DNA of 47,462 bases from Cercozoa sp. M6MM. Taxonomy: Eukaryota; Protista; Endomyxa: Ascetosporea. The stretch lies in assembly GCA_040357565.1 (NCBI GenBank), contig JBDODJ010000082.1; one strand, 5' to 3'. Below the pieces are notes generated by a model. It saw only the letters and a list, made by a program, of their open reading frames with translations, made no database searches and was not told the origin of the DNA. Numbering within the stretch: position 1 is the stretch's first letter; each line of letters starts with the position of its first letter. This document shows positions 14,112 through 47,462 of this stretch, in pieces. The translations under genes and the position numbers were made by a program.

Positions 14112-16719
<2,608 letters not shown>

Positions 16720-35591: not shown

Positions 35592-36834
35592 TCACTTGCT
35601 AACAGCGGAACGGGCGCGGTGCTTCTGGATGTGCTGCGACACGGAGAGCGTGACAGCGCGCGTCAGAAGCAGCGCGAGCAGCGGCGTGACGTTCTTGTTG
35701 GACTGCGCCGGCAGCTCAGAAGACGGCGGACAGGAAGTCGTCGTCTCCACTGTGACGCGGCGTGACGAGGCCGCTGGGAGAGCCCAGTTCGCCGAGGAGG
35801 TCAGTTTCAAAGCTCGCTGTACATACAGGGACAACGGTACAGTCAAGTCCAACAAGTCAAGTTCAACAAGTCAATCAACGAATGAATTCAATGAGAGTGT
35901 ACCGCCGAAAACTGCGTTGAAGTCGTCCATGTCGAATTCGGCGAACGCGGCGATTTCATCAGGCGTCGCCAAGGTATGTCGGCCAACTGTAGCGGTATCG
36001 GTCGATCCTCCTGCTTCAGCTGCTGCTGCTGTTGTTGTTGCTGCTGCTGCGGTTGTTGTTGTTGTTGCTTCTGCTGCTTCAGCGACACCGGGAAGCACGA
36101 CGAGTCTGGGCGGAGGCACAGAGCCCTGCTCACCAACGTGCAGAGCAGCGCCGATATCAGACGCGCGAGCCACTCCAACTGCTGGGAATTCACAATCTCA
36201 AGTTCTGCTGACTTGTTGATAGGGCTCGCGCGGCCGGCGGCTGCCTGCTGCACCTGCTCTCACCACACAGACAAAGGTACAGGGGGGGTACAGGAAAGAT
36301 GTCGGGTCGGGTCGGGTCGCAAGGTAGCAAGGTAGCAAAGGGTACAATGTTGGTTTCGAGATGATGCTGCTGTTCCAGTGCCTGCACTCGCATGCGGAGC
36401 TCCTGGTTCTCGCGTCGCAGCTGCTGCGACTCGGCGGCCTGCTGCTCGAGCGCCGACAGACGCGCCGACAGCGCCGCGTTCTGCTGCTCGAGAGCGGCGG
36501 CGCGGTCCTCCAGATTCGCAATGTAAAGCTTCTTACGCGCGCGCGAGTTCGCCGCCGCCACGCGATTGCGTTCGCGTCGCTCGGCCAGTTCGTCCTGCGA
36601 CTCGTTCTTTCGCGCGCGCGCTCTCGAAGCTTTCGTGCCGGCCGTGCGGCGTCGCTTCGTCGTGCTCAGACCTCCTTCGTCACTGTCACTGCCGCTACTC
36701 GAAGACGGCGACAGAGAACGCGTTCGTCTCATGCCGGCACGAACGGCTTCGACATTAGATTGCTGCTGTTGCTGTGACTGCTGAGGCAGCTGTTGCTGTG
36801 GCTGCAGCACTGGCAGCACTGGCGGCGCAGGCAT
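35592..36834 (-). CDS. XBP1/HAC1/bZIP60-like bZIP transcription factor (unspliced form 354 aa, stop at 35592; IRE1-spliced form 304 aa, stop at 35716)
   Basis: bZIP RRERNRVAAANSRARKKLYIANLE plus leucine heptads; spliceosomal introns 36254-36345 and 35817-35902; two overlapping open frames downstream of an IRE1-type double stem-loop. Confidence 0.9.
36182..36207 (-). other. Putative 26-nt IRE1-cleaved unconventional intron
   Basis: Stem-loop 1 CAAGU-CAG^CAGA-ACUUG (36215-36199) and stem-loop 2 AUUCC-CAG^CAGUU-GGAGU (36189-36172) fit the CNG^CNG consensus; excision joins the bZIP to the acidic frame. Confidence 0.85.
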
Positions 36835-36941: not shown

Positions 36942-36964
36942 TGACGTCACAAAAAATGACGTCA
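36942..36964. promoter_or_regulatory. Two perfect CRE palindromes TGACGTCA (36942-36949, 36957-36964) upstream of the bZIP gene
   Basis: Exact 8-mers 15 bp apart, about 110-130 bp upstream of the ATG; a CACGTG also lies at 37062. Confidence 0.65.
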
Positions 36965-42603: not shown

Positions 42604-42657
<54 letters not shown>

Positions 42658-45448
42658 AGACACAGACACAGACACACACACACGGACACACACACACACA
42701 CACACACACACGAGCAAAGAAGCACCTCAGGCGTCAGCAGCGCCGTATACTTGTCGACCAGCACGTTGTACTTGCGCAGTTGCACACGTGCCCAGCGGTC
42801 CTTGGACAAGAAGCGGAAGAGGGAGGCTTCGACCGTAGGAGCAATCGGCATGGCCCAGTCCCTGGGAGGTCACAAGAAACGTACTGTCTCTCCACTCCCC
42901 TACTCTATGGAACACGGAACACGGTACGAGTAGGCCAGCTTGGAACGACACTGCAGTTTGTCCGCATCGTTGGCGTGTCGCTCTTCGAACGACGTCCAGT
43001 CTACCACAATGCAAGGAGAAATTTTTACGAAACGCGACATTCAGATTGACTCGGAGCAAATACCACTGGGCGAGCACTCATCTATGTTGTACGTGTGAGC
43101 ACCAACAGCGGCATCATCGTAGCTGGCGAAAGTAGCAGCCAACAAGGCGCACACTCCGTCTGTTAAAAAGCGAGGTATCAAAAGACCTAGGCGACGGACG
43201 AATGCAAGAACACATACAGCCAGATAGCTCGTTGAGCACGATCGAAGTGAAGGCATTGTTGCACATTCGAATGCGCAGAGTGGCATCGCCGTTGTTGAGC
43301 AGCTTGCTGCATCAATCATCGTGGTATTTGTCAATACCTCAGTGCAAGAAGATTTTACACATCAGGCACGGTCAGTTTGAGCGAATCGACTCGCGTTGCC
43401 GACACTGCCGACAGCACCATCGCCGGTTCTTCCTTACTGTCACACTCCCGATATCTCACTCAATGCAGGAACCGTCGAAGTCAGTACCTGTAGACAAAGT
43501 CGGGATGCGCCTCCCAATTCACGTCGAAACGCGAGAAGCGCTCAATGCCGTCCAGGTGCACTCGCAACACTAATTGAGGGTATTGGAAAGGCAAGCAGGG
43601 GACAAAGTCAAGAGGTCTCGGTACAAGGCGGCATGTGCACGAGCTTAATGTCGGCCGAACCTACAAGAAACTTTGATACACTAAGCTGAAGACACCAGTG
43701 CCAATCTACCCCTCAATTTGAGCCAGTGCAGTGGCCCCAGAACCGAGTGCAACCACGCCGACCAGGCCTCGACCACGTGCGCGTGCACCCAGGATTGTCT
43801 GCATGCACACCATACAGAAGAACAACACACATACAGAGTGTCTGATAGACACAGAGTATCGATACCCCCAACGGCGAGACACCTCCAAGTCAAGAGTCAG
43901 CGTGTCCGTGGCCGAGCGCGCAATCGCATCGAACAGACACACCACACCCTCGCGCAAATCCTCCGTCATAGTCTACGTACACTCTTAAAATAACCCCATG
44001 TGCACATGTGAGTCAAACTGTGAGTCATACAGTGTCAGGCAGTCCAGTCGGCAGCGCGAACTTCATGTCCAACAGAATCGTCACACTCACCGAGGGTGCC
44101 TAAACTTCACATATCAGTGCACTTTCAAGTCTCAAGAGTGGATTTATACTTACCATCTTGACACTCTTGCCACAGAAGGCATCCTTCACGATCTTGCCGT
44201 ACTGTTCAGACAGTCAAAAAGACATATTGAAGAGGTCGTCTTAAAAGAAAGCAGATGACGGTACGACAGGTTTCGTGCCGAGTCTCTCGGAGAACTCGAG
44301 GTGCACTCGTCGAAGTGCGCCCGACGTGGCCGGAATCACCGTGACGTTGTCCCTGCGACACCTCTCGTAAATTATACATGTACCTAAGTTCACATCCAGA
44401 AATGTCACAGCGTACACATGGTTCGGCATCGTTGTGATTGGCTTGAACGACACCTCGTTCGCCTTGCTGATGTCGAGTTTAAGTGTCTGACAAAACAAAC
44501 AATGCAAACTGACACCCCCAAGCGAGCTATGCAAGCATGGTACGCCATTGACTCTGTCCGGCAGCGATACAGAGGAACCCGAGACCTCGAGATGCTCCAC
44601 GTTGGCACTCGTGTACACGTACCTGTATCACACGAAAGAATGGAATAGTCTACGGGTGGGGGAGATGGTAAAGTACTACCCTTGCGTCAAGGCAGGCACA
44701 CGCAGTGACTTGACAGACGTCGTGACACGCACATCTCGTGCCGACACCAGTTGCTACAACGACTTGTACTGAAGAGTGCAAGTACAGTCAAAGGAGAGGA
44801 TACCTCGAAAGCAAAGTCGCCCAGTGGGTCACGACCAGCCTGCACGAACACGGCCTGTTTTGTAAAAGCAAGCGACGAGTTAACCGGCGTCATTTCCTAC
44901 GGAGAAGGGGTGTAGAAAAACAAGAAGTGTCTGTGTAACAAACAACAGCAAAAAGAAGTACCCTCAGGAACGGGTTGATAGCATCGTCCGTGAAGTAGCG
45001 GTAGCGCTTCCTGCCAAAACCGCCGCCGTGCATCAGAGTGCTCACCAAGTGCGCGTTCGACTCGGCATCCTCCAGTGGCCACACGCACGCTTTCTGAACA
45101 CGCAAATCAGACCGATACACCTGCAGCCACGGCACTTATAAAAACAGCAATCACAGAGAGTACAGAGAGAATGAAGCCGTCGCAGTCGGCGAGTTTCTCG
45201 TGCTCGAACGACGACTCAGTCACGTTGGCACTAGTGACCTGTGATTGCGATGAAAGGTACATCGCAAACAACAGAAACAGTCAAGGTACATTGCAAACTG
45301 TGAGGCATTCGCGAGGCACTGGCACGTTGAACACGCCCTAGATACAGCTCAGTCATCACGTTGACACGGAAACAAATAAATGTTCAATTACAGAACCGTG
45401 CGCACTACGAGCAAGCGCGCCGAGTAACGCAACCGCTAGTAAACGCAT
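41362..45448 (-). CDS. Large multi-exon secreted, probably GPI-anchored orphan surface protein
   Basis: First exon MRLLAVALLGALARSAHGS looks like a signal peptide; last exon has a P/T stalk, an acidic run and the hydrophobic tail DGAVQMSSVASLLLTLLTLLHCAW*; many short same-strand exons lie between. More than one gene cannot be excluded. Confidence 0.65.
42605..42711. repeat. Compound (CA)n/(CAGACA)n microsatellite, intronic
   Basis: Directly visible. Confidence 0.95.
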
Positions 45449-47339: not shown

Positions 47340-47420
<81 letters not shown>

Positions 47421-47428
47421 CCCATACA

Positions 47429-47462
<34 letters not shown>
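45608..47462 (+). CDS. ACC-synthase-like PLP-dependent aminotransferase (class I/II), 3' truncated by the window
   Basis: Spliced MISRRA..YIPFCVAEN, GTPKLRELMA, LVLSNGCG, IPAPYYAGF, LTSPYNPVG, HLVSDEIYALSVY and the PLP-lysine motif VHITYGMSKDMCLSGYRVG. Confidence 0.9.
47341..47462. repeat. (CA)n microsatellite, probably intronic
   Basis: Directly visible; runs to the end of the window. Confidence 0.95.

Follow-up and report, generated by a model that had tools for sequence, protein, structure and literature searches.

IRE1 is the most widespread sensor of endoplasmic reticulum (ER) stress, and a splicing substrate for it has been documented only in animals, fungi, plants or green algae. In vertebrates, the XBP1 mRNA carries a 26-nt intron between twin stem-loops with CNG^CNG loops (^, cut site), both seated on a stem that zips the exons together, and the frameshift caused by its removal gives the spliced form its activation domain. 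Plant bZIP60 and Chlamydomonas bZIP1 have twin hairpins on either side of a short intron, 23 nt long in Arabidopsis, whose removal shifts the frame; splicing takes out a hydrophobic or membrane segment, ligation is of the Trl1/RNL type, and Tpt1 is expected to remove the 2'-phosphate at the junction. The fungal HAC1, hacA, and Cib1 mRNAs are cleaved by IRE1 at twin loops, and a swap of the C terminus creates the active factor. Here we describe a basic leucine zipper (bZIP) gene, MHM6MM_003085, with a predicted intron of this kind in a rhizarian amoeba. It lies on contig JBDODJ010000082.1 of the assembly of Cercozoa sp. M6MM (GCA_040357565.1); the whole stretch analyzed, 47,462 nt in length, is referred to as the window, and positions given without a contig name are those of the window.

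M6MM is a marine amoeba from fish gills that phylogenomics placed in the Apofilosa (Rhizaria) and that is now named Lemnamoeba sinaloensis (PMC11069148, PMC13746701). The initial annotation of the window had argued that a host outside animals, fungi, and green plants or algae would extend the known range of the mechanism, and the published phylogenomics supplies such a host. Its interpretation is further supported by a covariance model made from known Hac1/Xbp1 introns, by an IRE1 gene with an intact RNase motif, and by two long frames of opposite character between which the 26-nt removal would switch. Neither of the two genome papers on L. sinaloensis mentions IRE1 or the unfolded protein response (UPR). 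We hold with good confidence that a predicted IRE1-type intron is the best explanation of the locus, which would make the transcript of MHM6MM_003085 the HAC1/XBP1/bZIP60-type UPR effector mRNA of the species. That the intron belongs to a working IRE1-bZIP switch is likely; it is graded no higher than this because the match to RF04247, the Rfam covariance model of such introns, scores below the curated gathering cutoff.

The bZIP gene, its twin hairpins, and its two reading frames

MHM6MM_003085 is read from the minus strand and has three exons (Table 1). The NCBI model (P0001, 354 aa) uses both ordinary introns and leaves the 26-nt segment in, which is the unspliced reading. Exon 1 translates to residues 1 to 163 of this protein and holds the bZIP domain at approximately 36433-36591 (Pfam bZIP_1, 4.6e-11; bZIP_2, 1.1e-10). 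Two bZIP_1 matches were found in the whole assembly, and that of MHM6MM_003085 is the stronger one.

Table 1. Positions of the features of MHM6MM_003085 and of two genes for RNA processing elsewhere in the L. sinaloensis genome
Feature	Position	Strand	Remarks
Exon 1	36346..36834	-	163 codons; start codon 36834; Q-rich N terminus, basic region, leucine zipper
Spliceosomal intron 1	36254..36345	-	92 nt, GT..AG, phase 0; NCBI P0001 junction ...ETNI|VQQAAAG...
Exon 2	35903..36253	-	Two reading frames (piecewise translation, stop map, hydropathy, charge)
Base stem 5' arm	36223..36231	-	GCGCGAGCC; aligned to RF04247 outer helix
Hairpin 1	36199..36215	-	CAAGU [CAG^CAGA] ACUUG, 5 bp, 7-nt loop; cut between 36208 and 36207
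Predicted IRE1-type unconventional intron	36182..36207	-	26 nt, CAGAACUUGAGAUUGUGAAUUCCCAG
Hairpin 2	36172..36189	-	AUUCC [CAG^CAGUU] GGAGU, 5 bp including one G-U, 8-nt loop; cut between 36182 and 36181
Base stem 3' arm	36163..36171	-	GGCUCGCGC; partner of 36223-36231
Spliceosomal intron 2	35817..35902	-	86 nt, GT..AG; NCBI P0001 junction ...TQFSA|RALKL...
Exon 3	35592..35816	-	Unspliced stop 35594-35592; predicted IRE1-spliced stop 35718-35716
Two TGACGTCA boxes	36942-36949, 36957-36964	.	Second extends to ATGACGTCAT; 108-130 nt 5' of start codon
IRE1 gene, C-terminal part	L001 = G000:C411:137-3253		PF06479 (KEN/RNase) over Pfam cutoff
Tpt1 (RNA 2'-phosphotransferase) gene	G000:C6:104804-105346		E 2.3e-46

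The two hairpins with CNG^CNG loops that the initial annotation had drawn just downstream of the zipper are present base for base, approximately 25 to 45 codons past it. Its reading of a 26-nt distance between the cut sites (36207-36182) and of a missing GT donor was likewise borne out: the segment, which falls in codon 179 onward, begins with CA and ends with AG and so has no GT at its 5' boundary. The second hairpin (AUUCC-CAGCAGUU-GGAGU) does have the 8-nt loop that had been pointed out, and the alignment to RF04247 puts one inserted base there. Both hairpins are enclosed by a perfect, G+C-rich base stem of 9 bp, whose pairing probability in the thermodynamic ensemble is approximately 1.0.

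RF04247 ("bZIP non canonical Hac1/Xbp1 intron") is a covariance model of 72 positions, and it recognizes the structure that the initial annotation had called IRE1-type by eye. The alignment covers positions 1 to 72 of 72 at 36158-36236 on the minus strand, with both cut sites in register, and scores 31.8 bits against a gathering cutoff of 41 bits; when 601 nt are searched, the E value is 4.3e-4. When the whole window was compared with all 4,227 Rfam families, RF04247 was the top match (E, 0.034).

Because 26 is not a multiple of 3, removal of the segment shifts the frame. The exon pieces were translated separately. In the unspliced frame, exon 2 encodes a hydrophobic stretch, LEWLARLISALLCTLVSRALCL, followed by a poly-Q tract, and the complete unspliced reading runs through ...KSAELEIVNSQQLEWLARLISALLCTLVSRALCL... 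and poly-Q to the end of the 354-aa protein. In the frame that would follow IRE1 splicing, exon 2 is Ala/Thr rich and then acidic (DEIAAFAEFDMDDF); the reading runs as ...KSAVGVARASDIG...DEIAAFAEFDMDDFNAVFG and, across intron 2, as ...SFETDLLGELG...GDDDFLSAVF, and the predicted spliced protein has a counted length of 304 aa. Over the 279 nt after the cut, 7 stops interrupt the third frame and none the unspliced and spliced frames; the spliced frame stays open for approximately 125 codons. The unspliced tail has a net charge of +14 and a hydrophobic 19-residue window (Kyte-Doolittle value, 1.81), and the spliced tail, with a net charge of about -14, is acidic, is studded with aromatic residues, and has no hydrophobic window. 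Both tails that the initial annotation had read, the hydrophobic unspliced one and the acidic and aromatic spliced one ending in DDDFLSAVF, were thus reproduced piece by piece; the spliced one requires that the ordinary intron 35902-35817 be removed, and the NCBI model uses this same intron. The predicted swap of tails between two frames is the pattern of XBP1u/XBP1s and bZIP60u/bZIP60s.

Among the described systems, vertebrate XBP1 shares with the locus the intron length of 26 nt, the twin stem-loops on an exon-zipping stem, the position of the intron a few tens of codons past the zipper, an NRVAA-type basic region, the hydrophobic segment of the unspliced form, and the frameshift that here is predicted to give the spliced form an activation domain. 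It differs in that the second loop of L. sinaloensis has 8 rather than 7 nt, the RF04247 score is below the family cutoff, sequence similarity does not extend beyond the bZIP (best phmmer match, approximately 1e-6), and the animal ligase RtcB is apparently absent from L. sinaloensis by six-frame scans of the draft. With plant bZIP60 and Chlamydomonas bZIP1 the locus has in common a short frame-shifting intron between twin hairpins and the predicted loss of a hydrophobic segment, but the intron has 26 nt rather than 23 and an RNL-type ligase is no more than probable in L. sinaloensis; the hydrophobic segment is not a clear transmembrane helix, because two Arg residues interrupt it. The likeness to fungal HAC1, hacA, and Cib1 consists of the predicted cleavage by IRE1 at twin loops, the predicted exchange of the C terminus, by which the factor would become active, and the nearest named bZIP relatives, which are basidiomycete Hac1/"XBP1" proteins (the phmmer matches include basidiomycete "X-box-binding protein 1" and XBP1-like NRVAAQ proteins). 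In contrast to Saccharomyces cerevisiae HAC1, in which a 252-nt intron blocks translation by pairing with the 5' untranslated region, both forms of the L. sinaloensis mRNA look translatable, as in animals and plants. Of the features of the family, L. sinaloensis has a bZIP protein, a predicted intron past the zipper whose removal would shift the frame, a base helix, loops with the consensus bases, and an IRE1 gene; the RF04247 score does not reach the Rfam threshold.

Some of the protein matches are of interest in their own right. Proteins P0002 (Pelagophyceae sp. CCMP2097) and P0004 (Logan) are near bZIP matches of stramenopile type with two bZIP-like basic regions; the C-terminal end of P0002 comes directly after the second zipper and may merit a look for an IRE1-type intron. 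Two XBP1-like proteins from Logan, P0007 and P0014, are near-identical up to ...SATTCETAV and then continue into a hydrophobic and a nonhydrophobic tail, respectively, as would be expected if a single XBP1 gene gave both an unspliced and a spliced isoform.

IRE1 in the genome and a candidate promoter element

The assembly that was searched comprises 23.61 Mb in 2,235 contigs; the published draft has 23.67 Mb in 2,244 scaffolds, a G+C content of 52.8%, and AC-type repeats at contig ends (PMC11069148, PMC13746701). A public transcriptome of L. sinaloensis, SRX22918777, is cited in PMC13746701. Long (AC)n arrays were seen in the window at 14525-14661, 42605-42711, and 47341-47462, the last of which ends the contig, as published for the species.

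An IRE1 kinase-KEN protein, which the proposed switch presupposes and for which the initial annotation had looked to the rest of the genome, is encoded there: a gene on contig C411, interrupted by introns, covers the end of the kinase domain and the KEN domain, with PF06479 above the Pfam cutoff. For all three KEN exon pieces, the best PDB matches are chains of IRE1 crystal structures, matched at consecutive positions, and the catalytic motif of the RNase (Y...RNK | HH) is intact. The introns of this gene are filled with differing simple repeats (TATG/TATA type, TTTA type), and a gap of N lies inside the kinase region.

XBP1, ATF6, and bZIP60 bind ACGT-core boxes, plant bZIP60-type factors target TGACGT-type boxes, and HAC1 is autoregulated via its own promoter. 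Upstream of MHM6MM_003085 there are two TGACGTCA boxes, 15 nt apart, which are the only ones in the window. The palindrome ATGACGTCAT, to which the second box extends, has 22 sites genome-wide, and 3 of these lie 5' of core UPR genes, namely, the bZIP gene itself (36942-36964), BiP (G000:C1069:1084-1093), and the main protein disulfide isomerase (PDI) (G000:C331:8538-8547). The BiP site is approximately 350 nt upstream of the start codon, the identity of BiP having been called from ER-type signatures and a signal peptide, and the PDI site is approximately 175 nt upstream of the signal peptide start of the top-scoring two-domain PDI. Two further sites are in or next to unrelated genes, one for a CH-domain protein and one for a dynein heavy chain, and at the other 17 of the 22 the adjoining open reading frames (ORFs) have no Pfam match. 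None of the genes for HSP90, DnaJ, Derlin, calreticulin, or ERO1 is on a contig with a ATGACGTCAT site, and the palindrome is not enriched genome-wide (22 sites versus 30 for the reversed control). Spread over 23.6 Mb, the 22 sites correspond to approximately 0.0005 expected per 500-nt promoter. That two canonical UPR targets and the factor's own gene all have ATGACGTCAT upstream would seldom happen by chance, in a test that is post hoc, the motif having been seen first. We regard ATGACGTCAT/TGACGTCA as a candidate cis element for bZIP factors and the UPR and as a candidate site of autoregulation.

Chance resemblance, mRNA decay, and other structures

Several results weigh against reading the locus as an IRE1-type intron. 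Orthologue searches of protein libraries, whether the query was the full ORF or the bZIP part alone, returned only the NCBI model itself, a representative protein library gave generic bZIP matches alone (E, 1e-6 or worse), and a metagenome scan for relatives of the bZIP protein found none. The folding check added the enclosing stem, absent from the initial annotation, and gave the hairpins themselves pair probabilities in the ensemble of only 0.3 to 0.5 (hairpin 1) and approximately 0.26 (hairpin 2), with the canonical fold 0.9 kcal/mol above the minimum free energy fold. Loop 1 fits the 7-nt consensus CNG^CNGN exactly, but loop 2 has the consensus bases within 8 nt, and experiments with yeast and human minisubstrates are reported to show a preference of IRE1 for loops of 7 nt. 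In addition to the shortfall from the gathering cutoff, the E value of RF04247 for the whole genome, extrapolated from 0.034, would by our estimate exceed 1, and the bZIP locus was not listed in a genome-wide RF04247 run that served as a nonexhaustive control (74 of 2,328 first-look candidates scored). The coding sequence is CAG rich, and CAGCAG words are therefore frequent. Of the IRE1 gene, which lies on a short, gapped contig, only the C-lobe of the kinase and KEN were seen; neither the luminal portion nor the N-terminal portion of the kinase was located in the draft assembly. The initial annotation had also looked to an RtcB or Trl1 ligase; six-frame scans of the draft with Pfam models PF01139, PF01951, PF09511, PF08302, and PF08303 found neither RtcB nor archease nor, even at an E value of 10, any of the three fungal Trl1 domain models.

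The alternative that best survives these results is a chance look-alike, in which two CAGCAG words of CAG- and poly-Q-rich coding sequence happen to fall into short hairpins and only the 354-aa protein is made. CAG-type repeats are abundant in both the gene and the genome, and a scan of both strands of the window (approximately 95 kb; loop CNG[C/A]NG of 7 or 8 nt, stem of at least 5 bp, pairs within 300 nt) found 17 single hairpins; only one pair emerged, however, that at 36172-36215. When the 443 nt after exon 1 were shuffled 20,000 times with dinucleotides preserved, a frame-shifting twin appeared 40 times (P of approximately 0.002), a count that leaves the perfect 9-bp base stem out of account. 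RF04247 itself matches unrelated repeats of this CAG-rich genome at 19 to 24 bits, and the genome-wide run returned one tandem repeat match (contig C867; 20.5 bits). Because of this background and of a score below the cutoff, RF04247 alone is insufficient for a genome-wide claim; the match gains weight because it falls just after the zipper of the genome's stronger bZIP_1 gene. This position, together with a second frame that is open for approximately 125 codons to an acidic, activation-type end while the third frame has 7 stops, and with the presence of IRE1 in the genome, speaks against coincidence, and even with the 8-nt second loop set against them we consider a chance look-alike improbable. 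The repeat on C867 (L004 1500-1620) is of the GGGTCA(G/A)CAGTACCT type and is a false RF04247 match of 20 to 24 bits.

Alternatively, IRE1 might cut the mRNA only to destroy it, as in regulated IRE1-dependent decay (RIDD), or to alter its stability, with no spliced and frame-shifted message arising. Schizosaccharomyces pombe and Candida glabrata keep IRE1 without a HAC1-type intron, and the failure of the Pfam scans to find an RNA ligase in the draft would fit such a fate. RIDD substrates resemble the locus in that their typical decay sites are CNGCNG loops in short hairpins, but these are single sites, whereas the mRNA of L. sinaloensis is that of a bZIP factor and has two sites, spaced so that removal of what lies between them shifts the frame, on a stem that would keep the exons in contact. 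Also against decay alone is the second frame, which is long and open and ends in an acidic tail. The genome also contains Tpt1, which removes the 2'-phosphate left by ligation of the Trl1/RNL type; with Tpt1 present and RtcB not found, the tRNA ligase pathway of the amoeba is therefore probably heal-and-seal, of the Trl1/RNL type. Furthermore, 461 tRNA genes have been published for the genome, and if some of these carry introns, a ligase must exist. We regard destruction of the mRNA without splicing as very unlikely. It is hardly credible that the locus is a regulatory structure unrelated to IRE1, such as a translational pause or localization element, or a very short spliceosomal intron. Ribosomes could be slowed by a stem as strong as this one of 9 bp, and the minimum free energy fold is slightly unlike the canonical one. 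However, there is no GT at the 5' boundary, 26 nt is far below the 86 and 92 nt of the gene's own introns, and in both loops the bases of the IRE1 consensus line up with those of RF04247.

The predicted switch and its distribution among eukaryotes

If the locus is an IRE1-type intron, the switch could run as follows. In the absence of stress, the unspliced mRNA would give the 354-aa protein, and the hydrophobic segment LARLISALLCTLVSRALCL in its basic tail may tether this protein, or the nascent chain, to the ER membrane, as in XBP1u or bZIP60u. Under ER stress, IRE1 oligomers would cut after G36208 and G36182, the base stem would keep both exons together while the 26-nt piece departs, and a tRNA ligase, probably of the heal-and-seal Trl1/RNL type, would join them. 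The frameshift would then yield the 304-aa protein, whose acidic, aromatic-studded tail would act as an activation domain and which would probably bind ACGT-core boxes, e.g., ATGACGTCAT, 5' of BiP, PDI, and its own gene.

On the whole, and with some reserve, we lean toward the fuller claim that this is the first IRE1 splicing substrate in Rhizaria (as far as was found, also in the group of stramenopiles, alveolates, and Rhizaria [SAR] and in any protist outside the green algae), with a second loop of 8 nt, with a ligase that is probably heal-and-seal, and with a UPR element of its own, the ACGT-core ATGACGTCAT, common to the BiP, PDI, and bZIP promoters. In the literature covered, to which the taxon list of Hooks and Griffiths-Jones (2011) did not belong, no IRE1-spliced bZIP was found reported for Rhizaria, stramenopiles, alveolates, or Amoebozoa, and no such intron outside animals, fungi, plants or green algae. 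According to a recent paper, IRE1-type splicing seems absent from early-diverging eukaryotes, and the substrate of Dictyostelium IRE1 has been called "yet unidentified" (PMC6025073). The IRE1 splicing switch probably works in a fourth major branch of eukaryotes also, to judge from the window and the genome. This result is expected rather than shocking, given that most of the eukaryote tree already falls between plants and opisthokonts.

A canonical substrate in a rhizarian amoeba that can be cultured would put the strictness of the 7-nt loop rule to the test, and the locus would supply a candidate promoter element of the UPR for a supergroup in which next to nothing is known of gene regulation. 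If the reading is true, the locus would also serve as a template in the search for substrates elsewhere among protists, for example in Dictyostelium. Not only IRE1 but the entire circuit of IRE1-bZIP splicing would then be older than the split of the major eukaryote groups and would go back to the ancestor that plants, SAR, and opisthokonts share.

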